A stretch of 64,000 bases of DNA, taken from NCBI RefSeq assembly GCF_006345805.1, contig NC_043000.1, positions 106,640,001 through 106,704,000 of the forward strand. Direction: 5' to 3'. Position 1 is the stretch's first letter; each line of letters opens with the position of its first letter. This DNA comes from Octopus sinensis (Eukaryota). The position numbers and the translations under genes were made by a program. Under the pieces are notes generated by a model. It worked only from the letters and a program-made list of their open reading frames with translations. It was not told the DNA's origin and made no database searches. Of this stretch, positions 999-41,908 are shown piece by piece.

Positions 999-1037
<39 letters not shown>

Positions 1038-1107
1038 GTGCTCTGTGCATTCTGTTCGTCCGTATATTTAGTATATGTTTGTATGTTTATTTACTACATG
1101 CTTTTAA

Positions 1108-1167
<60 letters not shown>

Positions 1168-1470: not shown

Positions 1471-1516
<46 letters not shown>

Positions 1517-5886: not shown

Positions 5887-5892
5887 TTTATT
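5887..5892 (-). terminator. Probable polyadenylation signal AATAAA of gene A
   Basis: First AATAAA on the minus strand, about 160 nt after the stop codon and before a (TA)n tract. Confidence 0.5.
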
Positions 5893-6049: not shown

Positions 6050-6207
6050 TTATCCACTGGAGATTTTGCCAAGTTCAATATTCTTCTGAATTTCTTCGAG
6101 TACCATTCTGGTAGCGCACTGCACGGCACTTACCTGACTTGACCTTTCACAGTGGCGTTTAGTGTTTGTAATGATTTCAGTCACATCAGCTGGACATCTC
6201 CATTCGA
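6050..6207 (-). CDS. Gene A exon 4 (terminal): LEWRCPADVTEIITNTKRHCERSSQVSAVQCATRMVLEEIQKNIELGKISSG*
   Basis: actttcag acceptor, phase 1 matching exon 3, TAA at 6052-6050; paralog of identical length (158 nt) at 28909-29066. Confidence 0.88.
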
Positions 6208-6365
6208 CTGAAAGTTGACATAAAGTTATATATATATATGTATACATATACAAGCACAAATACATATAAATAGATGAAAGTAAGAGATTTCTTTTAAAAA
6301 GGAAAACAAAACACAACGAATATAGGGATCAATACATGCGTATTAATTTTTATTATATATTGCTG

Positions 6366-6580
6366 GTAAGGCGGCGAGTTGGTAGAATCGTTAGCACGCT
6401 GGGCAAAAAGTTTTAGCGGCATTTCGTCCGTCTTTACATTATGGGTTCAAATTACGCCGGGGTTTGCTTTGCCTTTCATCCTTTCGGGGTCGATAAATTA
6501 AGTACCAGTTGCGATCTAATCAACTGGCCCCCTCCCACCAAAATTTCAGGCCTTGAGCCTTTAATAGAAAGGATTATATA
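6366..6580 (+). mobile_element. tRNA-derived SINE family 1 (gcctttcatcctttcggggtcgataaattaagtaccag core, Nin/Deu-domain-like)
   Basis: Head ggtaaggcggcgagttggtagaatcg plus conserved core; further copies at about 685-830, 1230-1345, 5050-5620, 7007-7207, 12470-12600, 33790-34190, 46410-46625, 49198-49820, 57655-57840 and 59945-60090. Confidence 0.85.
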
Positions 6581-7006
6581 TTGCTGATAGCGGCTTACTA
6601 TAAATAGTTTTACGCAGCGGTGGTACCTTCGTCAATGAGATGAATTCAAGGCGTAGATTATAAATAGGTTACCATTGCCGAGAGAGAAAACACAATAGAA
6701 AAATAAATAAAAATGCAAATGAAGAAGTGACAACGAGTTAAATGAAAGTAAAAAAAAAAAAAAAACCTGGAAAAGCCTAGACATAGACGCAACTATCAGC
6801 TGTTGACTCAAACTAAAAAGTGATTCTAGCTCCTAAAGAATAGTTTCATATGTTGAGAAATACCTCAAACATATTCATCAGGCACAAACCACATATTATA
6901 ATGTTATACGTAGTTTGAGCCCCCTGAATATGTTTGAGATATTTCTCAAGATATGAAACTATTAGTAGCACACAAGAAAGGAATATATTATATATTAAAT
7001 AATATT

Positions 7007-7207
7007 TAAGGCGGCGAGCTGGCAGAAACGTTAGCACACCGGGCGAAATGCTTAGCCGTATTTCGTCTGTCTATTCGTTCCGAGTTCAAATTCTGCCGAG
7101 GTCGACTTTGTCTTTCATCCTTTCGGGGTCGATAAATTAAGTACTGGGGTCGATATAATCGACTTGCCCCTCCCTCAAAATTTCGGACGTTGTGCTTAGA
7201 GTAGAAA
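7007..7207 (+). mobile_element. SINE family 1 copy
   Basis: Near-complete match to the 6366-6580 copy. Confidence 0.85.
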
Positions 7208-7278
7208 ATAAATTTTAATAATATTTATCTCTCACCAGATGGCGTACTATTTTTGTTGACCTTACCATCACGGACCAG

Positions 7279-7326
<48 letters not shown>

Positions 7327-7371
7327 GAGAATGTTAATGGATGGAAGCACTCCGTCGGTTACGACGATGAG

Positions 7372-8132
7372 GGTTCCGGTTGATCCGAATCAACGGAACA
7401 GCCTGCTCGTGAAATTAACGTGTAAGTGGCTGAGCACTCCACAGACACGTGCACCCTTAACGTAGTTCTCGGGGATATTCAGCGTGACACAGAGAGTGAC
7501 AAGGCCGGCCCCTTGAAATACAGGTACAACAGAAACAGGAAGTAAGAGAAAGTTGTGGTGAAAGAGTACAGCAGGGATCACCACCATCTCCTGCCGGAGC
7601 CTCGTGGAGCTTTTAGGTGTTTTCGCTCAATAAACACTCACAACGCCCGGTCTGGGAATCGAAACCGCGAACCTATGACCGCGAGTCCGCTGCCCTAACC
7701 ACTGGGCCATTGCGCCTCCACTCGCGAGAATGTTAATACGTAGTATACTGTTGTGGCACATCATTGGTTACAACAATAAGACTTCTAGTTGATCCGATCA
7801 ATGGTACAGCCTGCTCGTGAAATTAACGTGTAAATGGCTGAGCACTCTACAGACACGTGTACCCTTAACGTAGTTCTCGGAGAGATTCAACGTGATATAG
7901 AGTGTGAGAGTGTGACAAGACTGGCCATTTGAAATACAGGTAGAACAGAAACAAGAAGAAAGAGTGAGAGAAAGTTGTGGTGAAAGAGTACAGCAGGGTT
8001 GTCTACCACCCACTGCCGAAGCCCCGTGGAGCTTCAGGTGTTTTCGCTCAATAAATACTCACAACGCCCGGTCTGGGAATCGAAACCGCGATCCTACGGC
8101 CGCGAGTCTACTGGGTCATTGCGTCTCCACAC
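7372..8132 (-). mobile_element. Two tandem copies of tRNA-derived SINE family 2
   Basis: A-box/B-box head (tggcccagtgg...ggtttcgattcc) on the minus strand; the same family occurs at 14030-14320 (-) and 62914-63215 (+). Confidence 0.85.
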
Positions 8133-8972
8133 GTGGTATACACAGTGTGAATATCTGCACTTGGAAACTTAGTCTCCATAGGTCAGACTTAGACATCACC
8201 ATTTTTTTTTTGGGGGGGGGGGGGGAACTAGTTGATGCTGTTGCACGCAAATTCCTTCTTTCCACGCCATCCAGGCTGCTCATAGAATAGTCCATAGTGA
8301 TGTTATGGACGCTGCCGTCAGAATGCAAAGAGCTGGAACAGACACTACATGGTATTCACCTATGTAGACAGCTATGCACTCTAACAAGACTTAAATGCTG
8401 TATACGACTGGAAGAATGAGAATAAAATGTCTTTCAATGGCATGAAATCGGACTCACCGTTACGTAAAGGGGTCCTCCCACAACAAGTATGTAGCCGACT
8501 AATGATCATACACTGATCAGAACAGCTGTTAATGTTACATCCATGTATCCTACTGTTACATACAGCGATTTGAATTTTAGTTTCTCTAGATAGCCGTAGA
8601 ATTAGGGTACACTTGTGATGAAAGCCAATTATTCCGAAAAATATCCATAAGAAGGTTCCCGATAAGTTTGCATTATTTTTACCTCCAAAGCTAAATAACT
8701 ACACTTGTCTACAATATATAATGTTTCAGGCATTCTGTCTGTCTCTATCTTCCTACCCCTCAGTGTGTTTGTGTATGTGTGTATGTGTGTGTGTGTGTGT
8801 GGGGGTATGTATGTGTATGCATGTGCGTGTGCTTGTGGTACGTTTAGATAAATGTCGATAGGCAGATGTAGACAGAATAACTTCAAACGATCTTCGTTCC
8901 TAGGCGTTCATGTTAACACTTATAAAATTACATGTGTGTCAAAGAATTCTCAAAAAACTAAATAAGACTTAC

Positions 8973-9054
8973 GGAAACTACGTTTTCTACCAAACTTCAA
9001 ATCACAGTCGTCTGCTTTGAAAGTAATCACCAACGGCGTTCCATCGATTTCGAA
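8973..9054 (-). CDS. Gene A exon 3: FEIDGTPLVITFKADDCDLKFGRKRSF(+C)
   Basis: ttttcccaag acceptor and C|GTAAGT donor; 82 nt, phase 0 to 1; homologous to the start of gene B exon 3 (FEIDGTPLVITF identical). Confidence 0.9.
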
Positions 9055-9122
9055 CTTGGGAAAATAAATGAAAATAAATGTTAAAAATATTTATTGTGCA
9101 CACACACATACACAGACACACT

Positions 9123-9166
<44 letters not shown>

Positions 9167-10172
9167 GGCTAGGCTCGAAACGTAAATGACGATACGGTTT
9201 TCAAAAATAATATATGGAAAAATAGAATCAAGTTAAGTCATTTTACTCGACTTTACGCCTGCCCGCCACAGATATTGGAATCGTAAAATCACTAGAAAAC
9301 TGTTAAAAGCACATAAAATCATGCTACTGTACAATAAATAAGAATAAAAGCATATAAAATCATTTTAAAATACTTACAGTAAATGTTAAGATACATACCA
9401 TAAAGTAATGTAGCTAAGTGAACGAAATCATGAAATCACGAAATCATCAAAATGTATGTTCGTATTTGCAAATTTAAAATGATTTAGTCATTTTTACAAT
9501 TGCGAAATAATAATAATTACTGAATTTGTTTTTTTAATTTAAAAAAGCCCTTTATTTTACCATGTCTTATTGCAAACCGCATTCATAAATAAAGTGTTAG
9601 CGATGTACGGTAAACACCGCCAAATTGTACTTTTTTTTTACTGCACGGTATTAAAAAAATTAAAAAAAAATATTTGTTTGTAAGCTTAAAACAGGTTTTT
9701 ATTAACCATGTAGTATTGAAAATGCATTCACATTCATAAATAAAGTACAGAACTGGCAATGGTTATTATCGGTTTAGCCTAAGTAAATTCGGCCTAGTCT
9801 TGCCTAGAGATAATTTAATTCGACTTAAGTCGAAAAACGACTTAAGTCGTGTCTCTTGGAACCAATTAACAACATAGGGCGAGGTAAGCCTGTTTATACA
9901 TAAAAACGAACACACACACATACACACACGCACACACACACGCACACACGCACACACACACACACACACACATACACACAAGCAAAGGTACTTGTCTTCA
10001 ATCATCAAGATAAAATACTTGTTAATTAAATTATATTCACTAGCGTGATAATAATAATGATGATAATAATAATAGCTTTCAGTCATACTGTAACATCTCT
10101 TATCCTTCACTCGCCCCAGGACGCTAGGTCTGTCTCGGCAAGTGACTGTAACAAAGATGCAGATTAAAAGTA

Positions 10173-10218
<46 letters not shown>

Positions 10219-10571
10219 GGACTTACAAACACATATAACATACAGAAAATTGCACTACTAGGCACTGCACACATCCTACGCAGAACACTTTCCATACAAT
10301 AACCATCAGAGCATCACAACATCACCAGCACATACCCAAGGCACACAGAGCTGCGCTCGGTAGTGAAGTGAAAGCACGCTATAAAAATAAAACTACTGAA
10401 TAATAATAATAATAATAATAATAATTGATATGAAATCACTATGTCACGCACATATGGTTGTGATGCATGTGCCTGGTGTACCCTTATCAGACGGGTAGTC
10501 ATGATGGGTATACTGGGCTTCGTATATTTTACCCCAGGGTCACTTTGATGGCATGCACTGCTCTCTCACTC

Positions 10572-10632
<61 letters not shown>

Positions 10633-12398
10633 TTAATAATAATAGTGGAAATAATAATAACAACAGACAGCAAATTGACTCCAATTCACCAGACATTGTG
10701 ATTAAGGACTACAACAGACAAACTTGTCTGTTAGTAGATATGTCTGTCCCACAAGATTAAAATGTCTCAAGAAAAGAATACGAAAATCTTTTTCACTATA
10801 AAGATCTGCAAATTGAAATACCGAAAATGCTGAAGCTGAATACTATGATAATACCAGTGATAACTGGTGCGTAGGGAATGATAAAGAAGGGATCTGGACT
10901 GTTTTGGTCAAGGAATCTATCTGTTTTTCAGATAGATTCCTTGACCAAAACAGTCCAGAAGTGAGGTAGGGACATCGGTATGGGCGCTAGGAATACCAAA
11001 TGCTCAGTACTTAATATGAAAAGAGAGAAGATAGCAGCCTGCAGAGGATTGCGGTTACCATCAGGAGAGACCATGGGTGAACCCGACGGTAGTGGGTATA
11101 GATATCTAGGGATTTTGGAGCTGGATGACATTCTACACAGAGAAATGAAAGTCAAGGTCAGCGAGGCGTAACAAAAAAGGGTGAAGATGGTGTTGAAATT
11201 CAACCTGAATGCCCAAAATTTGATTACCGCAATGAATATCTGGGTAGTTGCGGTGGTTAGATACAGTGCGTCCATCCTCAAATGGACTAAGGAGGAAATA
11301 TCAACACTGGAGAAAAATACGAGAAAGTTGCTAAACGCTGCATGGGGCACTACACCCTAAAACAAAGTAAACAGACTGTATATGAAAAGAAAGAATGGTA
11401 GCTGAGGACCAATTAGTATAGACCATTGTATAAGGAGTGAAAGGATAACGCTTGCCGAGGACTTGATAAAGAGTGATGAAGACCTGCAGCGATATGCTGC
11501 GAAAGATATGGGTGTAAATGCAGATGAAATAATGGGCAAGGAAGAGTTTAACCAAAGAGCTGAGGAGAAGAGAAAAGAAGACCTTTTTGAAATGCGGATG
11601 CATGGACAGTTTGAAAGGAATACACAAGATGTTAAGGATAATATAGCATAGTGAGCGAGGTGATTTGAAGTGTACCACCGAAAACCAGAGCATTGCTGCA
11701 CAAGACCAGGCTCTCGTTAGCAATTCAGTGAAATATAACATCTATAAAACTTCTGACACCCAGAAATGCAGACTCTGTGGAAAGAGTGTGGAAAATGTGA
11801 CCCACTTGGTAAGTGGATGTGAGAGCCTTGCACAAAAAGAATACAAGCGCCGCCACGATAAAGTGTGTGCGTGTATCTTCATTGGCTCTTATGCCGTAAA
11901 TACCAATATGAAGTAACAGAGAACTGGTATGGGCATCTACCAAGTAAAGTTATGCAGGAGGATGGAGAAGTAAGGACACTCTGAGACTATGATTTTCAGA
12001 CGGATCGTGTAATCGAACACCGTCGGCCGGATATTGTCATAGTGAATAAGAGAGACAAATACCGCCAGATCATTGTTGTAGCCATACCAAATGGCATGAA
12101 TATTGTGAGTAAAGAGGTTGAAAAAATCACCAAGTACTCCGAATTGAAAGTAGAAATGGCAAGACTATGGAATGAGAGATACCAGTGGTGATCGGAGCGT
12201 TGGGCTCAATCTCATTGAAACTTCAAAACTTCTTAAGCCAACTAGAAATCCCATGCAAGATTGATGTTTTACAAAAAGCTGTCTTATTGGGCACAGCGCA
12301 CATCTTAAGGAAAATATTATCTATCTGAGGTCCTTGACAGATGACTAAAACTCCGGTGCATTTTTACCTACACTGTGTTACGAAATAATAATAATAAC

Positions 12399-12432
<34 letters not shown>
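10219..12432 (+). mobile_element. Dong/R4-clade non-LTR retrotransposon remnants (restriction-like endonuclease type) in (TAA)n tracts
   Basis: CRLCGKSVENVTHLVSGC zinc knuckle, RRHDKV, PDIVI and QKAVLLGTAHILRK motifs; (TAA)n flanks and tails; three fragments (10219-10430, 10670-10893, 10960-12432). Confidence 0.8.
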
Positions 12433-12436
<4 letters not shown>

Positions 12437-12851
12437 TGATGATGATGATGATGATAATAATAATTATTATCATTTCAAATTTTCGTCACATTTTTGTGGG
12501 GAAGTTGGAGATGCATCGATTACATCAGCTGGTACTTATTTTATTAACCTCGAAAGGATGAAAGGCAAAGTCGACCTCGACGGAATTTGAACTCGGAACA
12601 TAGCCACCATACCACCACCACCACCACTACCATCATCATCACAACAACAACAACAACAACTCCAAATTCTCAGCTTAGTTTTGTGGTTAGTATTATGGAT
12701 ACATTTAGGTTCAGATTAGATTTTTCGGATTATTGCTATTAAGCACCATAAAACATTTGCATAGATTTATTAGTCAACTCTGTGTTACAATGAATGTAAA
12801 CAACATAGCTATAGAATATATGGACAGACAGGCAGACAAGCATATAGATAG

Positions 12852-12888
<37 letters not shown>

Positions 12889-13226
12889 AAAAAGAAAGAG
12901 AGAGAGAGAAGGGGAAAGTGTTGTACATGTACGTTTCGATTGTTCTTGGAATCTTCGTTAGCAAATGTGTGCCCTCTTTGTCTATCAAACTGTTTATAAA
13001 CACACACCAATCAAATCAAGCATGTAAGTTGTTGTTTCTTTTTTTTTTATCCCCAAAAATATTGTATAAACGTGTTGGTCGCAATCATCGTAACACACAG
13101 TGTTGGCTGATACACATAAAAATATGTTCAATCGTACACGATAGGGACGAATCGAAACCCTGCAATTTCGAATTATTGCATTAAAAGCCAATCCAGGGAA
13201 AGGGATAAACAAGTCATTTTACATAC

Positions 13227-13399
13227 CTGCCCGTGTCTTTCCACGAATATCTCCTTGATGCCATGGAAGAATCTTTTAAATTTATTTCCCAGACCTTTTT
13301 CTAAACTTTCTTTTATTTTAGCGGCCGTTTGCTTTAGATCTAAGCCTTCACAGGAACTCAATTGGCAGTGGGCAGTGACCAACACAAGTAAAAAGACAA
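13227..13399 (-). CDS. Gene A exon 2: IVFLLVLVTAHCQLSSCEGLDLKQTAAKIKESLEKGLGNKFKRFFHGIKEIFVERHGQ
   Basis: ctacag acceptor and CAG|GTATGT donor; 173 nt, and 13+173=186 gives phase 0; hydrophobic signal core; clear paralog at 34379-34548. Confidence 0.9.
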
Positions 13400-13598
13400 C
13401 TGTAGATAAATATATATATATATATATATATGTATGTAAGTAGAATCAATGCGAAAATATGACAAAACTAAATATTTTAATTAAAATACACTTCATCTTG
13501 CAGTCTTCTAGAAATTGGGATCGAACCCCCGAACTACAAATCTATCTCTGATCACGTCTGTGCACGTAGAGTAACACACACACACACACACGCGCACA

Positions 13599-13629
<31 letters not shown>

Positions 13630-13846
13630 CACAAGCAAATACACATTTATTTGGAAAAACTGGAAAGTCACTCTATTGGTTCTTGGGGTTTCTCGTTCAG
13701 ACAACGTCAAATTCAATCCATTTTACATTGATTCAAAACTGCAGACGGTAGAGTACTACGAATAAGACCAGCGTCAATTAACAGTTGACTCCGAATGGAT
13801 ATATTAACTTTACGACCTACACCGAATACTATCTCGTTAGTTTCTT

Positions 13847-13917
<71 letters not shown>

Positions 13918-28014: not shown

Positions 28015-28472
28015 TACTTACATGCACATATACAAACACAGACACATAGACATATAGACAGATTGACAAACTCAGAAACTAAGAGGTTAGGCTGAACAAC
28101 AGATAAGTGCACTAGCTGCTAGCATGGGCTCTAAAGTATGATATTTATATTTCCCACCTCGTGTAACTATCATTAAAGTGTTTAAGTAAATGTAAATATA
28201 CTTGTCATATGTTATACATGTTTAAAACAGACTGCATAGCATATCGATGCTCTTAATGATTTCGAAAGAGCGAAGAAGCACTGCGTACGAATCCACCAAC
28301 ACATGTAAACAATACACACACATGTAGTTACACACCGGCACACACACTCTTACACACACCCCACCGCACACGCATACACTGTTTAATAGCTTTTGAAAAG
28401 ACAAATAAAAGGCAATAAGAGATTGCTGATAAAATTATTTTATTACTTATTTGTAGCTGGTGGTTTAGGTGA

Positions 28473-28521
<49 letters not shown>

Positions 28522-28799
28522 TATTGGTTTAGGCCAGTTTATAGAGTTATCTTGGGTTTCTTGCCATAAAAAGTACCTTTATAGCGTATCTTCTGACTCT
28601 AGAACCTGTTGGCCCATGGTCTCTTTAAAGTATGGAGAGGGAAACGATACGGATATAATCAATGGGAATTATCTCCAGGGTAACCTGATAAACCCAAGAT
28701 AAGCCTATAAACCGACCTTCACCCGTAATTAATATAGACTGCTCTACTTCTTAAAGTGTCCTCTTCTCCGGATTTATGTTTTTCTAAAAAAATTATATA

Positions 28800-28885
<86 letters not shown>

Positions 28886-28908
28886 CACTTCGTGTGTGTG
28901 AATCTATG

Positions 28909-29066
28909 TTATACGCCATGGATTTTGCCAGTTTCAATGTTCTTCTGAATTTCTTCGAGTACCAGTTTGGTAGCACACTGCACGGCGCTTTTCGGACTTG
29001 ACTTTACACAGTGACGTCTGGTTAGTGTAGTGATTTCAGTCACATCAGCTGGACATCTCACTTCAA
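28909..29066 (-). CDS. Gene B exon 4 (terminal): FEVRCPADVTEITTLTRRHCVKSSPKSAVQCATKLVLEEIQKNIETGKIHGV*
   Basis: actttcag acceptor, phase 1, TAA at 28911-28909; same length and Cys spacing as gene A exon 4. Confidence 0.85.
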
Positions 29067-29496
29067 CTGAAAGTTGACAAAATGTTATATATGTTTAGAT
29101 ATACATGCACATATACATATACGTATAACAGTTGCAAGTAAGTGATTCTCAGAAAACAACGAATATAGGAATCAGTTCACAAATTCAACAACCCCGGCCG
29201 CTCCATAGTTTCCACCTGTAACTGCCCCACAGAACACATTTCCAAATACCTCGACCTCATCCTTTCCCTTTAGTCGCTGCCTTCAGTCTCAGTTACATTA
29301 CACCAACCACAACGAAGGGAGAAGTTAAAATAATAGACAGAGAACACCACTGGAAAATACAAAAACTAAAAGAAGCAGCTCAACAACCTCCTAAGCAGAG
29401 CGAGTGCAGATATGAGCAGCATATGGGAACCAGTATTAAGGAAGGATAGAAAAATTTTAGACCTATAACGCCTAAAATTCACTCCATAATTGTCCA

Positions 29497-29760
29497 CGGG
29501 CATATAGCGTAGTAGTTAAGAGCGCGGGCTACTAACCCCAAGATTCCGAACTCGATTCCAATAAATGACCTGAACAATAATAATAATAATAATAATAATA
29601 ATGATAATACCTTAGGAATGAGAACCCAGGTTCGAAATTTCCCCAAGACACCTGAAGAAGGCTGGAGGGTATATCAGCCGAAACGTTGTGTTAACAACAA
29701 ACAAGTTGAGGACAAATATCCGTCGAATGTAAAAATTTAAATAATGTACATAATTCCTCA
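29497..29760 (+). mobile_element. tRNA-headed SINE with a Penelope-like, hammerhead-containing tail
   Basis: tagcgtagtag A-box and ctcgattcc B-box; acacCTGAAGA...GAAAcgttgtgt motif at 29648-29691. Confidence 0.65.
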
Positions 29761-29839
29761 TCTCTTCTATATAGGACTACATAGTCGGAGTATCTGCAGT
29801 TAGAAAATTGCACCTTAATGCACAAATTAATTATTTTTC

Positions 29840-30500
29840 TTTTACAAAGATCTAGCAGATGCCGATGAATGCAAGTCTCCCCTTTCCTCGCCATCGAAGC
29901 TATTTAGCAGCAGTGGTGTCATATGGACGGTGCCTTGAGAATCCAGTGAACTGGAACAGATGCTGCATGGCATTCTCCTATAACAATGCTGGTGGTCAAA
30001 ACAGACGACAATTATGCGCGCCAACAGATAGATGCTCATTACAGTTGGAAGAATGCGAATATCACGTCTTTTAATTTCGCGATACCATCCTCTCTGTTAC
30101 GTAAAAAGGAACTCCAACGAATGAACCATATCCAAGACGTGAAGAGAATTCAAAACTCTTTCGTTTACCTGGGTATTTGGATGCCTTCAAATATACAACG
30201 GCTTCACGAAATGTTTGCGTAAACTGATCAAACATTTCTGAGGACTTCAAAAGATATAGAGAAGCATTTTACACCAGTTTTTTGCGTCAGCCGTCTTTAT
30301 CCAATACGCCTCAACCAAAGCAGAGAATAGCTCCTAGTTCTTAGCTCCATTATCTAAAAATCTCACATATATTAACAAAGCTAACAAAAATATTTGGCCC
30401 ATAATATGTGAATAGAGACGATACGAAGGAAAAACATTTTACACTGAAAGCGATGTTTCAGCTCTCCAATGAATCAAAGAACACAAACTAAAATAAAATA
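29840..30500 (+). mobile_element. Degraded LINE reverse-transcriptase fragment in gene B intron 3
   Basis: FVYLGIWM thumb-region motif; many disablements. Confidence 0.4.
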
Positions 30501-31126
30501 TGTATAGGCTGGCATCTGTGGTTTAGCATACATACAGAATATATGTTCCCACCATATATTTATAGTCGTAAACCTTCGCTGCCATTCACAATTGAGCACG
30601 ACATGTTAACATGTATTATGGTTTCGCTAACTGTTTCTGTTGCCTATGTAATCACAAGGAGATTTACACACATTCTCGGCCCTTTCAACTTGACTCTAGA
30701 TGAGACAGTTCGATGAAGAGGGCTCTTCTCTACAATTGGTCTTATACTCATTTTCAGGTGAATTGACATGAGCAACGTGCAAATCAAAACGACTGTTAAT
30801 GTTATACTTTTGAAAGCTACTGTGATAGCGATTTCGATTCAAAGTTTTCTAGGTAGCCAACGAATCTTAGTACACTTCTGAAGAGGGCCAATCATTCCGA
30901 AACATATCCATAAGAAGATTCCCAGTACTTTTCCCTGCTTGCTTTAGAAAAGCAGGTAGGTTTTAATATCTTTTTTAAACGCTAAAGCTAAGGCAATTGA
31001 GTACGACATATATTTCAGGTATTCTGAATTAGCTTGTATTCTGGGTGTCAATCTGTTTCTCTCTCTCCCTCTGTGTGTGTGCGTGTCAGTGCATGTCAGT
31101 GTGTGTGTGCAAATCAGTGTTTGCGT

Positions 31127-31174
<48 letters not shown>

Positions 31175-31341
31175 GTGCGCGCGCGCGCACGAGTGGGCGT
31201 GCGGTTGTGTATTTGTGTAGCGGAGAGAGAAATAGGTAGATAGGGAGATGTAGACAGAACTGCATCAAATGATATCTCTTGCTATGCATGCATGTTACCA
31301 ATTATAAAATTACATGTGTATCTAATAATTCGCAATAAACC

Positions 31342-32195
31342 AAATAAGACTTACATGGACTTCGTTTTCCAATAATCTCCGAATAAGACTTAGATGGACT
31401 TCGTTTTCCAAAAATCTCCGAATAAGACTTAGATGGACTTCGTTTTCCAATATCTCCGAATAAGACTTAGATGACTTCGTTTTCCAATAATCTCGAATAA
31501 GACTTAGATGGACTTCGTTTTCCAATAATCTCCGAATAAGACTTAGATGGACTTCGTTTTCCAATAATCTCCGAATAAGACTTAGATGGACTTCGTTTTC
31601 CAATAATCTCCGAATAAGACTTAGATGGACTTCGTTTTCCATAATCTCCGAATAAGACTTAGATGGACTTCGTTTTCCAATAATCTCCGAATAAGACTTA
31701 GATGGACTTCGTTTTCCAATAATCTCCGAATAAGACTTAGATGGACTTCGTTTTCCAATAATCTCCGAATAAGACTTAGATGGACTTCGTTTTCCAATAA
31801 TCTCCGAATAAGACTTAGATGGACTTCGTTTTCCAATAATCTCCGAATAAGACTTAGATGGACTTCGTTTTCCAATAATCTCCGAATAAGACTTAGATGG
31901 ACTTCGTTTTCCAATAATCTCCGAATAAGACTTAGATGGACTTCGTTTTCCAATAATCTCCGAATAAGACTTAGATGGACTTCGTTTTCCAATAATCTCC
32001 GAATAAGACTTAGATGGACTTCGTTTTCCAATAATCTCCGAATAAGACTTAGATGGACTTCGTTTTCCAATAATCTCCGAATAAGACTTAGATGGACTTC
32101 GTTTTCCAATAATCTCCGAATAAGACCTAGATGGACTTCGTTTTCCAATAATCTCCGAATAAGACCTAGATGGACTTCGTTTTCCAACAATCTTC
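31342..32195 (-). repeat. 39-bp tandem array, 22 copies (+ strand unit gaataagacttagatggacttcgttttccaataatctcc)
   Basis: Counted directly; near-identical units; four 1-nt deletions (copies at about 31420-31457, 31458-31494 with two, and 31612-31649). Confidence 0.97.
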
Positions 32196-32251
32196 GCTTC
32201 ACAGTTGTCTGCATAGAAGGTAATTACCAGCGGTGTTCCATCGATTTCAAA
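31355..32251 (-). CDS. Gene B exon 3, extended by 21 in-frame 39-bp repeats: FEIDGTPLVITFYADNCEAKIVGKRSP[S(K/R)SYSEIIGKRSP]x21
   Basis: ctatctaag acceptor at 32252-32253; the only GTAAGT donor lies in the last repeat copy (31354-31349); 897 nt as assembled, and 897+4 deleted nt = 901 = 82 (gene A exon 3 length) + 21x39. Confidence 0.75.
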
Positions 32252-33550
32252 CTTAGATAGAAAAAGTAAGGAAGATATGTTGAAAATTGTTACTGTATAC
32301 AAACTCATGCACTCATACACAGGTGCAAATACGGGCGTGCGCACAGACGCACGCACAGACGCACATACACACGCACAGACACACGCACAGACACACGCAC
32401 ACACACGCACAGACGCACATACAGACACAGACGCATACACATGCACAGACGCACACACACACACAGACGTGCGAACGTAAAGGTAACTTTGTAGCCAATA
32501 TGCCGGATATATCTAAGCATTTTTCTTTAAACGAAAATGACCTATTGCAAGGTTTTATATAGTACTATTTGTTTCAAAATATATTTGGATATATATATTT
32601 TTGTGGTGCTATGATATGTCTGAAGTTGTTCTTTTGTAGGTGTCTATGATGTGCTAAGCTTTTTTTTATCGATAATTTTATTTTTGTGATCGAAGAAAAT
32701 CACCTCTTTATGTTTTACTTAATATATTTTCGTGTAATTTCAAAATTGATATGCAATACATAAAAAGGAACAGACCCAAGAGAAATGGGTTTTATTACTG
32801 AAGAGGACTGGTACAGGATAATATAGCTTGTATTGTGGTTTGATACTCTGGAGGAAAGATAGTTAATGCGACGTAGTATCATCAATTGGAAGCATTGCAA
32901 AAGAAAATGCTGCGATTAAGACAGAATAAGCATTTGTTTTTCGTATTGAAATCAGAAAAGACTTTATTTTCAATCTCCTGTTACCACTAACAATTCCAGA
33001 CATATATATAGAGAGAGATACAACTCCTACAACATTTAAAATAAATACGACAGCCACACTAACGCACTTAGTAATCCGAATATATGAAAATTGGAACAGT
33101 TCTCTGGAAATGCATTTGAAAGTTCAAACAGTATCTAAGGCTAAGTCTTCCATACTGGATCTTTACATTCTATTGCTTGATCAATTGTTCTCTTCTGTAT
33201 AAAGTACAGAATTCAATCTTCTTGAATTCTGTACTTTATTCACATCATAATTATTTACCATCTCAACCTTTACCATTTCCTCAAATTTTATCTAATTACT
33301 TTTTGCTGTTACTATTCTTAGGTTAAAGAATAACAATAACAATAACAACAACAACAACAAATTCTTAACTTATATGAAGGACTAATTTTGTCGTTAGTAT
33401 CATGGTTGTATCAAGGTATAGATAAAATTTCAGTATTATTGTTGTAATGTATTACAGAATATGTCCATAAATTTATTAGTCAAAACTGTGTTACGATGAG
33501 TGTAAAGATCTTCACAATATGATCGTAGACAGATAGTTAGATCGAGAGAT

Positions 33551-33582
<32 letters not shown>

Positions 33583-33789
33583 TAAGAGAGATAGAAAGAG
33601 AGAGAGAGAGTAAGAGAGATAGAGAGAGTAAGGGAGATAGAGAGAGAGAGAGAGAGAGTTGGACGTGTGTATTGGAATCTTCACCAGGAAACGCGTACTC
33701 TCTATCTGACAATTGTTTATAACCCACACAAATTAAATCAAGCATGTATAATTGCTGTTTGTTTTTATATCCACCAGAATAATATTTTC

Positions 33790-34190
33790 TACTCTAGGCA
33801 CAAGACCCGAAATTTCTGGGGAGGGGGCCAGTCGGTTAGATCGATCCCAGTACGCAACTGATACTTAATTTAGCGACCCCGAAAGCATGAAAAGCAAAGT
33901 TGACCTTGGCGGAATTTAAACTCAGAACGTAAAGACAGACGAAATACCTATTTCTATTACTTTACTACCCCCAAGGGGCTGAACACAGAGGGGACAAACA
34001 AGGACAGACAAACGGATTAAGTCGATTACATCGACCCCAGTGCATAACTGGTACTTAATTTATCGACCCCGAAAGGATGAAAGGCAAAGTCGACCTCGGC
34101 GGAATTTGAACTCAGAACATAACAGCAGACGAAATACGGCCACGCATTTCGCCCGGCGTGCTAACGTTTCTGCCAGCTCGCCGCCTTATA
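33790..34190 (-). mobile_element. Two adjacent SINE family 1 copies in gene B intron 2
   Basis: Reverse-complement head (gccagctcgccgcctta) and two cores; absent from the homologous intron of gene A. Confidence 0.8.
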
Positions 34191-34378
34191 TCCACAAGAA
34201 TATTGTATAAACGTGTTGGTTGCTATTATCATAGCGCAAAGTATTGGCTGATGCACAAATAGATATGTTCAATCGTACACAGCAGTACCGAAACAAAACG
34301 TTTGTTACATATCTGAGATTTAGGATTTTTGATCAAAAGCCCATTCAGGGAGAGAGATAAACAAGACATTTTACATAC

Positions 34379-34548
34379 CTTCCCACTTTCCGGGAAAAGG
34401 AGCAACTTGAGTTTGAAGAATTTTTCAAGTTTATTCCCAAGTCCATTCTCTAGAATTCCTTTTATTTTGGTAAGTGTTTGCTGTACATCAAAGCCTTCAC
34501 AGGGATCGAACTGGCAGTAGGCAGTGACCAACACAAGTAAAAAGACAA
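34379..34548 (-). CDS. Gene B exon 2: IVFLLVLVTAYCQFDPCEGFDVQQTLTKIKGILENGLGNKLEKFFKLKLLLFPESGK
   Basis: tttacag acceptor and AAG|GTATGT donor; 170 nt, and 13+170=183 gives phase 0; paralog of gene A exon 2. Confidence 0.9.
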
Positions 34549-34551
34549 CTG

Positions 34552-34602
<51 letters not shown>

Positions 34603-34644
34603 CTGTGTATATGTATATATGCATGTATGTACATCTATCTAGCC

Positions 34645-34717
<73 letters not shown>

Positions 34718-35520
34718 GTTTAGGGAAAATAAGAAGAAAATGGAGAATAAATGGATGTAATTACTGATTTATTTGCATGTTATAAAAAGATAGCGTTTTT
34801 TTTTTAAAAAACATAAATAAATAAATTGATTGGAAATTGAAAGCTTGAAGAAAAATAAATTAAAATGAAAATAGAAAAGAGAACCTACATTTATGTTTCA
34901 GTTGTACCACCGAACTGATGGGAATCTACAAGCATATCGTTTAATGCTAAGGAAGTTGCCATATTCAAGGTATATGTGGTAGGACTTCGTCATGGTTCAA
35001 AAAGAGGTAACGCAACTTTTGAGGGAAATGTATAATATTGGCAGGTTAAAAGTTAAAAGTTACGTATTGAGATTTTATTTGATTGGTAGATTTTGAATAT
35101 TTGTGAATATATCATATACAATATATTATAATTAGGAAACAAATAGATAAATATAAAAATAAATTTAAATATGACCCCAAAATTTCGGGCCTCCTGCCTA
35201 GACTAGAAAAGATTCTGTGCGTCTGTGTGCAAAGACCAGCTGTGTTTTGCAGGGCTGCCTTATTTTAAACCCTTAACTTAGAAATGGAGACAGACATAGT
35301 GCTAGATATAACAAATAAGCAATTTGAGGCTAGAAAGAAAGTGGAAAAAACATGAAATTCTTCGAGCAGGCATGTATCTTATGCAAAATCTGTGACGAGC
35401 CCGAGTGACCTTGATGACCTGGAGTCGCCTCTGAGACACCCACCTCCACATATATATGAGATAGTTTTTTGAGAAAAATATAAATCCGGAGATGCACACT
35501 CTAGGAAGTAGAGCAATCTA

Positions 35521-36725
35521 TATTAATTACTGATGAAGGCTGGTTTATATGGTTACCCTGGATGTCTCGCCATAAAGGGTAACTTTATGGCGTATCTTCA
35601 GACCCTAAGGCCTGTTGGCATATGGCTTCTTTAAAATATGGAAAGGGAAGCGATATAGATATAAGCAATGAGTATTATCCCTCTTTGGTGCTGGCCATCG
35701 GCTTCCGGCTATGTCGTCCTCCTTCAGTTATAGCAGCGTTTCGTTATATTTAGCAACAACATTGACAGCGGTAACAGCAGCAGCAGCAACAACAACGGTA
35801 GCAACACCAACATCGGCAGGCTTAATAACACCAACACAGGCACTACCGGCAACATACGCGGGAGCAGTAAGACTATCGAAGCAACCGCAATCTCCAGTAG
35901 CACCACCACCAACAGCCCCAGCTCCAGCACCACTAGAATCAACACCATTGGTAGCACCAGCAGCAACATCAATAGCGGCACCGACAGCAGCCACAATATC
36001 GGTAACTACAACCACAACTGCAGCATCGACAGCAGCAGCGGTAGCAGCAAATACAGCAGCGAAAGTCGGCATGACACCGACACCACACGTCCAAGGAAAT
36101 ACATTGGATGCACGGGAATTTCTTTCCAGCAATAGATCCTCCTTCAGAGTCCCGGAAATGAGATATGTAACATTGCTGGCCAGCCATATCTGGCAACTGA
36201 ATGAAGATGGGATTCCATACTCGGTATCATGGAAAATCCTCCACCGTCCGGGTCCGTACAAAAATGTAACGAAACGCTGCAAGCTATGCATAACCGAACG
36301 CATGAAAGTCCTGAAAAACTCGCACGTACCATGGACCATACCGAACTCCAGAACGGATATTTTCAGTCCCTGCTTGCATTTCAGGAGATTCCTATTAGCG
36401 TTTTTGGACCCGCATAATAACGATAATAGCAGTATTAGCGATAATTACACCACAGCTGGAAATTGATTGCTGATGAGAGTACCCTACCTTTTAGCCTCCT
36501 AGCCGACAGGTAGCGTGAGTGAAGGAGGACGACACAGACGGAAGCCGATGATCAGCACCAAAGGGAGATAATTCCCATTGTTTACATCTGTATCGTTTCG
36601 CACTCCATATTTTAAAGAAGCCATATGCTAACAGGTCCTAGGGTCTGAAAATATATCAGAAAGGTACTCTTTATGGCGAGAAATTCCAGGGTAACCCTTT
36701 AAACCAACCTTCACCAGTAATTAAT
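35521..36725. mobile_element. Element with diverged inverted termini of about 200 bp enclosing a Penelope-type endonuclease C-terminal fragment
   Basis: 35521-35726 is the reverse complement of about 36510-36725; the internal frame contains PYSVSWKIL...CKLCITER...CLHFRRFLL. Confidence 0.65.
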
Positions 36726-36727
36726 GA

Positions 36728-36799
<72 letters not shown>

Positions 36800-38077
36800 T
36801 GTTGTGTCTTGGGGTGGGTCATTACGACAATAGGGATAATAATACTCATACTAGTTCAATGCCACTTCGTTATTGTTAATCAATTGGTTAAACATCTGGT
36901 CAGCTAACTAATCGATTGTTTGTTTATTATGCTGGATAAACAATCAATCAGTTGTTTTTCCGTCATCATTTCCGACCATTTTAGTGACTTAGAGACTTCT
37001 CCTCTCTCTCCTGGGTTTGCTGTGAATTTGTCTGATAATTGACCTTATGCCTGTGTTCTTGCATACTCGCTTGTGTGGTTGCTTAAAAGAGGATGTAAAG
37101 CTGAAAGTAAACGAAAAGTCTGTGTGTAGATAGAGGGGGCGGGCATGCACTCGTGTGTGTGGTTGTGCGTGTACACCCGCTTGACTGCTTGTATGTGTGA
37201 GAGTGTGTATGTGTGCGTTTGTGTATTGGTGCTGTGTGTGTGTGCGTGCATGTGTGTTGATAAACCAACCGACATCTCCTTAAGGGTTTAGCCTTGTATT
37301 CAAAGCAAGTTCGGTCTCAGATCTACTGGGATTCGCTTGTCACCCTGTAAAGATTTATGGGTGTAGAGTGTAGATCTTTAGGTGGGTATCTGCACGCGCA
37401 CATGTCCGTGGGTGTGAGTATGTGTGTGCGCGCACGACTGTGTAGTCTAGAGTGTGTGTTCGTGTGTTTGAGTCAGTTTTGTGAGTGCGTATGTTTTTAT
37501 GTGTGTGTGAATGTGCGAGTGTTTGCTTACGTAAGAGTATTCCAGCGTATGTGTGTATGTGTATCTCTGTGTATGCTTGCGTATGTGTTTATGTGTATCT
37601 CTGTGTATGCTTGCGTTTATGCGCTCTTGTATATGTGCGTTCTTGTATGTCTGCATGTGTTCCTGTGTACATGTGAGTGTGTTTCTGTGTACGTGTGAGT
37701 GTGTGTGTGCGTGTGTGCACATGCGTATGCGTGGTGTGAGAGTTTACGTGGTTGTGTGTTCTTGTGTTCCCCTATGTGTGTGTGTGTGTATGTATGTGTG
37801 TGTGTGTGTGTGTGTGTGCGTTTACGCATTGCGTACCTGTCCGTGCCCGTCCCTGCGCGCGTGGATGTGAATAGTCCTGTATGGCTGTGTATAGGAGTTT
37901 TTCATAGCTAAATTATTTAATGTTTATGGATTTCTTCGTATCCTGCTGTTATTCTTTCTTCTATCTTATCAGTACCTCCTATGCTTACATATATGCATGC
38001 GTGCGCGTGTGCGTGAATATGTATGGATGTGTATGAAACTGTTGATATTTACACGTATTTATATGTATAGGTTATAT

Positions 38078-40790
38078 TAGTGGTTCTCAAAGTGGGTTCT
38101 GTGAGCCCCCTAATTTTTGATGTGTGTATAAGGTGCGCTTATATAGGAGCTTGCACTCAGTGTGCACGCCTAGACGTGACCTTAGTTACTGTTGGCGTCG
38201 GCTGCGGCTTGCCAGAGCAAATACCTCAGGCTGTTGATCAATGTGCTTATACGTGCGTACCTGGGTTTGAAGGTGAGTGATTGCATGTTAACTGTCCAAT
38301 AGTTTTGCAAGCCTATTAAAGTTGAAAACGTTAATTAAAACATTAATCGAGACATTCTGCTCAGGCTCATATTGCTCCTTGTATAGACCGTTTGAATTTG
38401 AAAGGAGCAATTTTACTGCATTATAAGTAAGGTTTTTTGAATATATGTGGCATAACACGAAATATAATATGGCAAAATCAATCGATAATGTTATTTTATT
38501 GACTTTCAAATACTTATTTCCATTGAATAGGGTTTTTTTTATCTTTGCCTGGATTTAGTTCCCGAGCAATAACAATACTACATTTAAAAGTTATCAGAAT
38601 TCAGTTTTTGGACTCTATATCTACGTTTTCTGTCCTCAATGTGGCAGTGATTTCTTTTCTCACAAATTTTTTCTGATTTTCGTTCTATTTTTTGTAGTTA
38701 TCAACTTCCTACCATTACTTCAAGAAGCTCTAATAAAAGGCCGTTTACACGCAATTACCAACAAGAGCTTTTACTACTTGCTTTTTTTGCCTTCAAGTGA
38801 TAACTCGGATAAGCCTCGATGTATTGAATGTGGGTTGATAATGACAAATGAATCCATGAAGAAATCGAAGATCCTTAGACATCAGTAAGTACAGCATCCT
38901 GGTTCCGTAGGCAAAGAACGCAATTATTTTGAGAAGAAAGCCGAGCAACGACAGAAGAACAAACCACAACCACATCAGTTGTTTACGAAAAGAGCAAATG
39001 AAAAAACCAAAAATATACTTAAAGTGAGCTGCTTGGTAAGCCAATTGATCGCGAAAGCGGGTAAGCCACATACAATTGGTGAAAGTTTAGTGAAACCAGC
39101 TATGCAAGTGAACTCCTTGGACAAAACGCCGTAACCGTCTTACAAAAAGTCCCCCTTTCGATGATACTGTCAAGCACAGACAAGATGAGATGGCAGAAAA
39201 CCTCGACTAACAACTGGTTGAGGCACTAAGACTCTCGAAGTTATCTTTCCAAATCGACGAGACAACCATTAGGAACTCCTCAGTGCTATTGGCGTATGTT
39301 CGATGTGTTGAGGAAAAAAGATGCTGGAAGAAATGCTCTTCATGAAGAGACTGCCGGATACAAAAAGTGAAACTATTTGAAGATATCTGTTCACAGATAT
39401 CTTCAACAGAAAGGAATTCCTCTGGAAAACCTTTTTCAAATCGCGACAGATGGTGCTTGTGCGATGACCGGCGAACACAATGGTTGCACAGCAAAATTCA
39501 AAGAAGTTGCTCCGCACTTGTCCATTCATTGAATCATTCATCAGGAACATCTAGCTGCAAAATTCCTCGGTGGCGATATGGAGATGGCATTACAGGTTGC
39601 TGTTTCAGCTTTCACGACTGAATTTTTCACAAACTATTTTTCACAAACTATGCGAGGTTCGATGGCTTTCCAAAGGTGATTCCCTTCTTCGTCTAACTGA
39701 AATGTAGAGCATGGTTCTTTCCTTTGTCAACCTTATGAAATCACAAGCCTGCACAAAGAAACAGATGACCTATTTTCAGCCATGAGTGAAGATGACACAA
39801 AGGCTAAAATTTTCTATTTGGTTGATCTGTTTTTGCATGTCAACCAACTGAATAAAACCTTTGGCAGCTGCACCTTCAGAAGAGGGGTTCATGTTCTTTG
39901 GCAACTTAGCAAAGGCCTCTTCTTCCTCCGTTGTCATTGCAAACTGTACAAATCATTTGGAAAGCTTAAGAGAAGGTATCAATCGATGGTTTAAGGATGT
40001 CATCGAAATAAAACCCACTAAGTGGATTTCTGATGATGCTCATTTTGATGTTTTAAGGGAGGGTAGCATCGATACTATCATTGCCGCAGATTTGGTCGAA
40101 CTTAAAGAAAACAATATTTTGATGGGGAGACCCCAAAAAGAAGGATTGATGGTATGGTTGGAAGTGAAATCTTCATTTCCCGTCCTCTTAAAAAGGTGGT
40201 GCCCTTTCTTTAATGGTTTTCTACAACGTGTTTGATTGAAGCTGGATTTTCTGCATCAAATCATATTCCCACAACTAAAAGAAATGTACGACAAATTGAA
40301 AAGAGAGGTGATTTACAACTTAAGCTGAACCACGATATGAAGATATGTAAGGGGTCCGGTAATTGGTCGGTGGATTGGATAAAGTTTGGGTTAGTGGTCG
40401 GTGGGCGTGATTAGGGTTCGTCACCTCTAAAAAGGTTATAATCACTTACAAGAACAAGTAAATAAGAGTCCAGATAAATTGGTATAAATAGGTACGTTGG
40501 ACTACGCGAAAGAGGGGTTAAATTTGTTTCAAATCCGGGCCACCTGCAAGCTTTTGTAAAAATTCGAAATTTCTATAAAAGAGATAAAAATTTAACTCTT
40601 TAGGGACAGAAGGATTTATGCAGTATGCCGGATTTGTACGTCTTTCTCTACATTAATCTTTTCAAGGCAACACAAAATTAGCAACTTATATTAAATCAAT
40701 AGTGCTAATTAGGTCTTCATTCCAGTGGGCCCCGGAATTATTGGGGGTATGAAAAGTGGGTCCCGGACACAAAAAGTTTGAGAACAGCGG
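38078..40790 (+). mobile_element. hAT (Buster/Charlie) DNA transposon, degraded, in gene B intron 1
   Basis: Termini tagtggttctcaaa / tttgagaacagcgg; 8-bp TSD GGTTATAT at 38070-38077 and 40791-40798 (central TA); transposase motifs KAGKPHTIGESLVKP, QIDETT, ATDGACAMTG and IIHQEHL. Confidence 0.9.
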
Positions 40791-41826
40791 GGTTATATGC
40801 AGAATGCATATAACCCACTTGGTAACATTGGTGTTGAAGATCTACAACCTCTTATGTAAATTTTCTATTCAATTTTGATAATGTCTCATTTATGAGAACA
40901 GACTCGTGTATTTGTCTTATCTATGGACCTCTTTGATTATTATTATATTCTGGTAGACTCCCATAGCGATTGAATGTTTAAAAACTAGTTTTATAGATAC
41001 TTCTTTCAAAATTCTTATTTTGTTTTTCTTACATTAACTTGTGTAGGTTGAACGATGTAAAATGTTATAGAAAGGAACCTCGCTATTTCTCGCAAAATAT
41101 GCCAATACATACATCTGAAACGAAGGATAGATTGTGATGATAAAGTCAGCTTCCATTTAAGATTTTATTTTTAAAAAAAGGTTAAACAAGTATTCGTAAT
41201 AGATATAAATTCACTTTAGATAAATGTGGATATTCTATACCGTAGATAGCATATAACATCTATTTTCAGTTTTGTGGAGTTAAAATATTTTTTGACAGCA
41301 TTCAGTGACTGTTCTTAATGCATCCAGTCTCATTGTATTTTTTTCGTAGTATTTTATTCTTCATGCCTTGAAGTGTTTGGGTCCAAAATAAATCTATGTA
41401 TATATGTAAAAGTCATGGCAGATCTAAGAAAAGGTTTATGATTTTTACATAAACTATATATTTAGTAGCCAACTGGGAAAGCATTCACAACGCAATATCA
41501 ATTCCCAATGAGATTTAACAGTAATAATGCATAAAACTTAAAAAAACCAACTTGAAATAATCATACTGGATCAGGGCAGTCCAGGTTTCAAAGACCAACA
41601 ACAAAAGTAATCCTATATGTGCTATACCTGAAACAAAAATATTCAGATTAATGATGGCTAGAATGGCTTTCAGCAAATGTAGGGCTACTGAACTGGGAGA
41701 GAGCAAAGTTTAACACACAGCAACATAAAAAGGAAATTTAAAAAACAAACTACAGCAGACGTTCATGATCTGAAAATATGATGAAAGTCAAGAGAAAGAA
41801 AGATTAAAAGATTCCATCTTACTTAC

Positions 41827-41839
41827 TAGAAAGTCTCAT
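41827..41839 (-). CDS. Gene B exon 1 (coding part, MRLS plus first base of I)
   Basis: ATG AGA CTT TCT A|GTAAGT; flanking intron and 5' sequence are homologous to gene A exon 1. Confidence 0.85.
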
Positions 41840-41900: not shown

Positions 41901-41908
41901 TTTTTATA
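41901..41908 (-). promoter_or_regulatory. TATA box of gene B (TATAAAAA)
   Basis: Upstream of gene B exon 1, positionally equivalent to the gene A TATA box. Confidence 0.6.

Follow-up and report, generated by a model that had tools for sequence, protein, structure and literature searches.

The 64,000-nt stretch of Octopus sinensis DNA analyzed here (contig NC_043000.1 of RefSeq assembly GCF_006345805.1, positions 106,640,001 to 106,704,000 of the forward strand; the whole stretch is referred to as the window, and coordinates follow its own numbering unless another sequence is named) carries two paralogous genes, designated A and B', which lie head to tail on the minus strand, consist of four exons each, and open with an N-terminal signal-peptide-like segment. 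The gene structures, obtained by reading the sequence and by tblastn, are real, far beyond chance. The same four-exon organization is found in the independent annotations of O. vulgaris and O. sinensis, and a tblastn search of the window with protein A recovered the exon sets of A and B' and no other copy. The preliminary description of this locus had proposed such a pair, with TATA boxes in both genes and homologous intron edges, and in these respects it was correct. It had also called the genes unannotated, which holds at most for the present assembly, as the O. vulgaris reference (OX597817.1) contains gene models for both and paralogues are RefSeq models elsewhere. The genes had further been described as hidden from a scan of open reading frames (ORFs), which is only partly so: exon 2 of B' and its repeat array fall inside mechanically called ORFs of 160 and 380 amino acids (aa).

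Gene A runs from 15825 to 6050 and is composed of exons of 13, 173, 82, and 158 nt, with AG/GT at every internal exon border and intron phases of 1, 0, and 1. Exon 1 (ATGAGACTTTCGA, 15813..15825) ends at a GTAAGT donor in phase 1. Exon 2 (13227..13399, acceptor AG, donor GTATGT, phase 0) encodes the rest of the signal peptide and the N-terminal helical region, while exon 3 (8973..9054, donor GTAAGT, phase 1) encodes the beta-strand core, Cys79, and an invariant G-RKR site. Exon 4 (6050..6207, including the TAA stop) supplies the C-terminal module with Cys94, Cys109, and Cys120. The spliced coding sequence (CDS) of 426 nt is free of internal stops and gives a 141-aa protein that matches the peptide of the preliminary description exactly. 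Upstream, a TATA box (TATATAAATA, 15873..15882) is followed about 28 nt downstream by an initiator (Inr)-like element (TTCAACACTTG, 15855-15845). Both elements are invariant in the seven paralogue and orthologue promoters that were aligned, where the Inr-like TTCAACA(C/G)TTG stands about 28-30 nt from the TATA box. AATAAA signals are present past the stop codons of both genes; for gene A, the first lies at 5887..5892, 158 nt past the stop, with an ATTAAA at +125 and a further AATAAA at 5771. Directly upstream of the gene A promoter, a unit of approximately 1.1 kb with long (AT)n tracts occurs in four tandem copies (15923-20011). In the O. vulgaris reference, an extra unit of this kind holds a second, identical gene A promoter and exon 1 (L001:8988 and L001:10001), 1013 bp upstream of the annotated one, and the window has a single copy. 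Downstream of gene A, a 49-nt tandem repeat of 6.6 copies, also detected with periods of 98 and 147 nt, occupies 2966-3286. The next annotated gene downstream of A in the O. vulgaris reference encodes a glycosyl-hydrolase-18 (chitinase-like) protein on the opposite strand (L001:28061-31924); by colinearity, this gene begins just beyond the left edge of the window (1-1500 and beyond).

Gene B' extends from 41839 to 28909 and follows the exon layout of gene A except for an enlarged exon 3. Its TATA box (TATAAAAA, 41901..41908) and Inr-like TTCAACAGTTG (41881-41871), placed by the promoter alignment, precede exon 1 (13 nt, 41827..41839, donor GTAAGT), exon 2 (170 nt, 34379..34548), exon 3 (31355..32251), and exon 4 (158 nt including the TAA stop, 28909..29066). 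Exon 3 measures 897 nt, i.e., 82 ancestral nt and 815 repeat nt. The other three exon lengths had been given correctly, but not that of exon 3 (82+819 nt). The additional sequence is no foreign insertion; it consists of 21 extra tandem copies of the exon 3/intron 3 junction. The 39-nt unit comprises the last 24 nt of exon 3 and the first 15 nt of intron 3, as defined by comparison with a second-locus paralogue that keeps the junction in single copy (AGATTATTGGAAAACGAAGTCCAT/GTAAGTCTTATTTGG, the slash marking the junction), and in frame it encodes 13 residues (GKRSPSKSYSEII). Tandem Repeats Finder (TRF) placed the minisatellite at 31343..32193, with 21.9 copies and 98% matches. All internal copies carry two derived changes, G to C at donor position +1 and T to C at +13. 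The orthologous donor site after the first 82 nt reads CTAGGT, not GT, and only the last copy retains CAT/GTAAGT, at 31354, the sole strong donor in the region. With no GT donor in the internal copies and a single strong one at the end of the array, the whole array must be read as exon, and this donor is also the one chosen in the gene model of the O. vulgaris reference. Amplification from a copy in which the donor GT had changed to CT would have turned 15 intronic nt per unit into coding sequence.

Four 1-nt deletions, located in copies 13, 17, and 18 and each reducing a run of two nt to one, bring the extra length to 815 nt instead of 819. As assembled, the CDS of B' is therefore 1238 nt long, which is not a multiple of three, and the third intron is not in phase 1, so that the identical phases previously attributed to the two genes do not apply to B'. 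The frame is lost after 13 clean repeats and exon 4, whose sequence is intact, is read out of frame to a stop, giving a product of 362 aa. Each of the 10 extra copies in the O. vulgaris reference measures exactly 39 nt, and the CDS there, 813 nt in length, stays open to the end of exon 4. An exhaustive profile search identified the corresponding 270-aa protein, CAI9721111.1 (P0007), as gene B' with ten in-frame repeats and a C-terminus of ...GKIHGV. The same 270-aa protein was used to search for other repeat-bearing orthologues, and the search returned mostly low-complexity candidates, with only P0007 itself and P0006 being informative. In the window as in the O. vulgaris reference, B' has kept its promoter motifs, every splice site, and exons 1, 2, and 4 intact. 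Intron 1 of B' harbors a 251-aa ORF (35711-36466, plus strand) with an Ala/Thr/Pro-rich N-terminus and a C-terminal ...KRCKLCITERMKVLK... segment. It has no Pfam match, its neighboring sequence is common to the second-locus copies, and it may be a transposon remnant.

When compared to the O. vulgaris reference, the window showed 1.4-1.5% substitutions plus indels. This divergence is close to the 1.22% heterozygosity reported for O. vulgaris (PMC10700109) and similar to the distance between O. vulgaris and O. sinensis at the second locus. The reference chromosome OX597817.1 has the two genes in the order and orientation of the window, with B' at 63.816-63.828 Mb and A at 63.842-63.854 Mb. Gene A is 98% identical to the 141-aa O. 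vulgaris "Hypothetical predicted protein" P0001, with three residues differing, and the array of extra repeats in B' numbers 21 copies in the window and 10 in the reference. The second locus, 66 Mb from the pair on the same chromosome in O. vulgaris (129.6 Mb; 40.7 Mb in O. sinensis), holds paralogue C, paralogue B, and a TPR gene, in that order, and the 39-nt unit is single-copy there. The segment 26701..42089 of the window, read on the minus strand, is approximately 93% identical to the B gene together with about 2 kb of the sequence beyond it, as far as the beginning of the TPR gene model, and the homology ends at both boundaries. B' is therefore a segmental copy of B, of approximately 15.4 kb, inserted upstream of A. 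The tandem arrangement noticed earlier is real, but it did not come about by a simple local duplication of A. The far end of the duplication (26701-28014) is homologous to the region with the start of the TPR-repeat gene model beside B at the second locus and is probably a truncated, non-functional copy of the 5' end of the TPR gene.

Synonymous divergence (dS) was 0.08-0.12 between B' and B, 0.022 between O. vulgaris and O. sinensis orthologues, and 0.40-0.46 between A and either B or C, by which measure the B' duplication is about 4-5 times older than the split of the two species. Purifying selection was evident between A and C (ratio of nonsynonymous to synonymous divergence, dN/dS, 0.36; Fisher p = 1.5e-4) and between C and B (p = 1.3e-3). 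The original B gene at the second locus (L003, OX597817.1, 23165-33970) is intact in the O. vulgaris reference and encodes 142 aa, with Cys21 replaced by Tyr. In the O. vulgaris annotation, B is mis-modelled as P0006 (151 aa), in which unrelated upstream exons are joined to exon 4 of B.

A and B' are new members of an uncharacterized but already predicted family. Searches with phmmer and hmmsearch, which followed the earlier proposal to look for paralogues, returned relatives in octopods, Argonauta, abalones, a limpet, and a chiton, all of them unnamed, "uncharacterized," or hypothetical. RefSeq proteins from O. sinensis, O. bimaculoides, and Argonauta hians, labeled "uncharacterized," match protein A at 55-74% identity. 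The close relatives (O. sinensis LOC115211078 and LOC115210997, O. bimaculoides LOC106870724, and Argonauta hians LOC115210761) share the four exons, the signal peptide, the Cys framework, and the G(R)KR site. Profile searches added two further Octopus loci (LOC115215373 and LOC115215941/LOC106883259), four Haliotis species, Patella caerulea SNE40_000730, and the chiton Liolophura sinensis LOC135463155. E-values ranged from 2e-85 to 1e-8 across octopods, abalone, and chiton and were weaker for the limpet (7e-6). The distant members from Octopus, Haliotis, Patella, and Liolophura are 24-38% identical and lack Cys21, and the abalone proteins carry two extra Cys. The family, which has no Pfam entry and is defined here from alignment A5, is a mollusc-wide set of uncharacterized proteins of about 140 aa with an N-terminal signal-peptide-like segment. 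The suggestion that it is lineage-specific does not extend to the family level, given the homologues in Haliotis, Patella, and Liolophura; only the MRLSIVFLLVLV subfamily is confined to octopods.

Thirteen residues are invariant as far as the chiton (G61, T68, C79, K86, R87, C94, A96, V98, E100, C109, A117, C120, and A121). Among them are the four Cys (C79, C94, C109, and C120 in A, also kept in B'), which are invariant family-wide and are spaced C-x14-C-x14-C-x10-C in octopods, as the preliminary description had stated. The N-terminus of A, MRLSIVFLLVLVTA, shows a basic n-region followed by a hydrophobic stretch of 12 residues, a feature common to all relatives. The signal-peptide-like segment proposed earlier is therefore present, but its cleavage after G23 was a guess, and cleavage after C16 also meets the -3/-1 rule. 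All members of the close subfamily have a Cys at residue 21 or 23 (O. vulgaris B has Tyr instead of C21 and retains C23), which suggests that this Cys belongs to the mature protein. Because this Cys is retained throughout the close subfamily, the comparison argues for cleavage after C16, exposing Gln17, rather than after G23.

The expectation that no characterized family would match was confirmed. Pfam gave no family at E<=10 for A or the short form of B' and none at E<=0.01 for the four single-module distant members, and for the chiton protein it returned only sub-threshold noise. The profile search of the PDB gave nothing significant (best E-value 1.8), and Foldseek found no match at E<=0.001 against the PDB and BFVD. 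The best Foldseek matches, dsRBD-like alpha-beta3-alpha topologies, were rejected at TM<=0.40. Likewise, matches to the bacterial proteins P0012, P0013, and P0015, giant Bacteroidetes adhesins with E-values of about 1e-4, were rejected as homology, being due to a repeated 27-residue motif (G..DGT...N..AD.C) worth 5-6 bits per copy; Pfam gave nothing meaningful for these proteins. A literature search with the LOC names, accessions, and peptide strings of the family found no publication.

The strongest pointer to function is a Gly-(Arg)-Lys-Arg between the first and second Cys, FGRKR in A and VGKR in B'. K86-R87 is invariant in 18 of 18 aligned proteins, while the other eight positions of the 10-residue loop vary. 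Gly stands directly before the basic run, KR or RKR, in all 23 of 23 sequences or modules. The distance from the first Cys to this Gly varies from 4 to 6 residues, the G-(R)KR shifting as a unit. Dibasic cleavage followed by Gly-directed amidation is the outcome of processing by a convertase, a carboxypeptidase, and PAM. A Gly abutting the basic run and moving with it, despite changes in loop and run length, is as expected of an amidation/cleavage signal. The predicted signal peptide of the abalone and limpet members is succeeded by a short propeptide whose last residues, KR, precede a Q. The chiton protein is composed of three near-identical modules joined by the same KR/Q junction, a polyprotein layout that would need dibasic cleavage. 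Additionally, the boundary between exons 3 and 4 lies two codons past the KR. In O. bimaculoides LOC106883259 (L006, CM046610.1, 10166-31928), a single set of exons 1-3 precedes a tandem series of at least four alternative terminal exons (near 18394, 24114, 28632, and 31839). Each of these encodes a complete 3-Cys C-terminal module, and two of them match RefSeq isoforms X1 and X2.

A structural model was obtained with AlphaFold2 (AF2) on an 18-sequence multiple sequence alignment (MSA), using the database protein P0001, which is 98% identical to A, as the query (predicted local distance difference test, pLDDT, 75; predicted TM score, pTM, 0.67); a run with the 5-sequence subfamily MSA was unusable (pLDDT 37.5). 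The model contains helices at 26-39 and 43-49, strands at 59-64, 71-76, 80-83, 90-100, and 106-111, and a helix at 114-134, and the GRKR loop has lower confidence than the flanking strands 80-83 and 90-100. In an antiparallel hairpin register, residue 79 would face residue 94. The processing, expression, and function that we infer for A and B' would run as follows. The protein would enter the secretory pathway by means of its signal peptide and adopt a small alpha/beta fold, with two helices at the N-terminus, a sheet of five strands, and a long helix at the C-terminus, in which Cys79-Cys94 would staple the beta-hairpin and Cys109-Cys120 would tie the last strand to the helix. The Gly-(Arg)-Lys-Arg at the hairpin tip would then be cut by an enzyme of the furin/prohormone-convertase type, after which removal of the basic residues would expose the Gly for conversion to a C-terminal amide. 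The product would be a two-chain, disulfide-linked secreted molecule made of an N-chain, ending in ...DLKF-NH2 in A, and a C-chain of about 54 aa. In B', where each exonized repeat carries GKR, an open frame would also release 10-21 copies of SPSKSYSEII-NH2. Candidate roles are those of a signaling peptide, a pheromone, or a defense molecule.

Several known systems resemble parts of this scheme. Dibasic cleavage within a disulfide-bridged precursor leaves two covalently linked chains in the insulin/relaxin-like peptides and in the califins of Aplysia, and the same two-chain outcome is what we propose here. The family differs from insulin/relaxin in having four core Cys instead of six, no CC motif, a single basic site, and no excised C-peptide, and the Pfam, PDB profile, and Foldseek searches found no sequence or fold similarity to that superfamily. 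Multiple copies of a "peptide-GKR" layout are known from FMRFamide-like precursors, and B' shows the same layout. Luqin-type precursors carry a short peptide of the ...WRPQGRF/RW/RY-amide type immediately behind the signal peptide, and their C-terminal part contains a pair of Cys spaced by 10 residues (PMC7041311). They share with our proteins the signal peptide, a GKR-type amidation/cleavage motif, and the C-x10-C spacing (C109-x10-C120 in A). However, A has no WRPQGRF-amide-type peptide beside the signal peptide, about 60 folded residues precede its GKR, the family has four Cys where luqin precursors have two, and no sequence similarity was detected. Identity as a luqin precursor was consequently rejected, as the required luqin-type peptide is absent and the C-x10-C alone is insufficient. 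With coding minisatellites (variable number tandem repeats, VNTRs) and exonized introns, the B' array shares a unit length that is a multiple of three, near-identical copies, and a variable copy number (10 versus 21). It differs in that the unit spans a splice donor, that the amplified copy has the donor-killing G to C change, which makes 15 intronic nt per unit coding, and that each unit duplicates the family's invariant GKR site.

Taken as a whole, the explanation that we prefer, and to which we give about an even chance, is that the family consists of secreted precursors cut and amidated at G(R)KR into two disulfide-linked chains, B' being a repeat-expanded segmental copy. Some of our own results weigh against it. 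AF2 yields one compact domain, which would allow the KR to sit in an ordinary surface loop of a protein that is never cut; the disulfide pairing was deduced from the secondary-structure string, not from coordinates; and the fifth Cys (21 or 23) of the close octopod subfamily is unexplained by a scheme of two disulfides. The O. vulgaris gene models could in part be of ab initio origin, since they come from an EVidenceModeler (EVM) merge of Iso-Seq, RNA-seq, and Augustus/GeneMark predictions (PMC10700109). For B', the frame-lost array of the window would yield the N-chain, 13 clean repeats, and a nonsense tail without a C-chain, and the dN/dS of B' against B (0.5-0.8, on short branches) is indistinguishable from neutral evolution.

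The compact domain leads to one alternative, which we consider fairly unlikely, namely that these are uncleaved, single-chain secreted alpha/beta proteins in which the invariant G-K-R hairpin tip serves as a recognition loop. Such a loop could be canonical-inhibitor-like, presenting Lys/Arg as P1 to trypsin-like or convertase-type proteases, or could form a binding site for anionic ligands. AF2 does fold the N- and C-terminal halves into one sheet, and cleavage at G(R)KR is predicted from the sequence signature. Bowman-Birk-type inhibitors have disulfide-framed reactive loops, and the KR stands midway between the invariant Cys79 and Cys94 in a manner like the loops of small disulfide-framed inhibitors, although this is a resemblance only. 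A fixed structural turn is nevertheless less suited than an amidation signal to a Gly that keeps abutting the basic run while the run and loop change in length; the P' side is variable and hydrophobic; and the KR/Q junctions elsewhere in the family, together with the three-module chiton polyprotein, imply convertase processing. No sequence or fold match to any inhibitor family emerged from Pfam, the PDB profile search, or Foldseek. A further proposal, which we regard as very improbable, shifts the activity to the N-terminus and holds that the proteins are precursors of antimicrobial peptides, the active part being processed amphipathic helices (GLGNKFKRFFHGIKEIF in A; QLVTGILSAALPTLSNLLL...GKAVGWVTSFF in the chiton). 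Helices are indeed predicted at 26-39 and 43-49, and this region evolves fastest: 10 of its 37 positions are invariant, compared to 26 of 43 in the core of the C-chain. Diversification of this sort is typical of defense peptides, and several paralogues show dN/dS of 0.4-0.8. Yet the helices and the beta core are not separated by a dibasic site that would allow a short peptide to be set free, and conservation is highest in the sheet and the C-terminal helix rather than in the helical N-terminus. Pfam and the PDB profile search showed no similarity to known antimicrobial peptide families; the helices may resemble those of the piscidin/pleurocidin type.

The status of B' is a separate matter. It is quite possible, though short of an even chance, that B' is a dying duplicate whose repeat expansion, placed at the tip of the hairpin, destroys the fold, that the frameshifts are real, and that the 270-aa model annotates a non-functional locus, leaving only A functional. 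The loss of frame after repeat 13 in the assembled sequence would fit this, as would the four 1-nt deletions within 815 nt of array, a frequency about 3-4 times the background for 1-nt gaps when window and reference are compared. The substitutions between B' and B do not depart from the neutral expectation, and the original B, intact at the second locus in the O. vulgaris reference sequence, would make B' redundant. Against such decay stand the ten copies of exactly 39 nt in the reference array, with an ORF open through exon 4, and the preservation of exons 1, 2, and 4, the promoter motifs, and the splice sites in both genomes. The deletions all shorten 2-nt runs within a near-perfect tandem array, where assembly or polishing errors are to be expected, and visual inspection of the alignment assigns roughly equal numbers of derived amino-acid changes to the B and B' branches. 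At the other extreme, B' may be a newly born multi-copy peptide precursor that releases 10-21 amidated decapeptides SPSKSYSEII-NH2, with a copy number polymorphic in the O. vulgaris complex, while its parent family would be a conserved, overlooked molluscan two-chain amidated hormone or pheromone; we offer this as speculation, with a small chance of being right.

Regarding the remainder of the window, ORFs that look like remnants of retroelement gag genes were identified at 42765-43301 and 22241-23337, both on the plus strand, with a common ...PDGTRLHV/...PDETRLRV motif, and one of them has a CCHC zinc knuckle (CYLCSSESHLKMDC). The former lies just past the 42089 boundary of the segmental duplication. 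Neither has a Pfam match. In all, Pfam found nothing in five ORFs of the window outside A and B', which are possible transposon remnants. Large AT-rich satellite arrays with a unit of about 34 nt (TTTTGAAAATTTTCATCAAAA...) occupy 44471-44871 and 51364-55607, where the GC content drops to 26%, and arrays of a 10-nt unit (CAATCTCCGG) are interleaved with the satellite at 53288-53503, 54295-54527, and 54894-55117. Scans of the window with Rfam and for tRNAs found nothing.

Scans that rely on ORFs miss genes with short exons, such as A and B'. Should the processing model be wrong, the locus adds two more uncharacterized secreted-protein genes that are already in the reference annotation. Two features are of interest in themselves, namely a deeply conserved amidation/cleavage signature at a disulfide-stapled hairpin and a coding minisatellite that spans a splice site and varies in copy number. 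If the processing model is true, B' would be a rare, datable case of how repetitive peptide precursors arise, and if the reading of B' as a newborn precursor also proved right, the origin of a repetitive neuropeptide-like precursor would have been caught in the act. Under the same model, the proteins described here would represent an ancient family of secreted, amidated two-chain peptides, so far undescribed, that chitons, gastropods, and cephalopods have in common. In octopods, this molluscan family would have diversified to occupy at least six loci, one of which holds alternative exons for the C-chain in an array, and it would be a candidate hormone, pheromone, or defense system.

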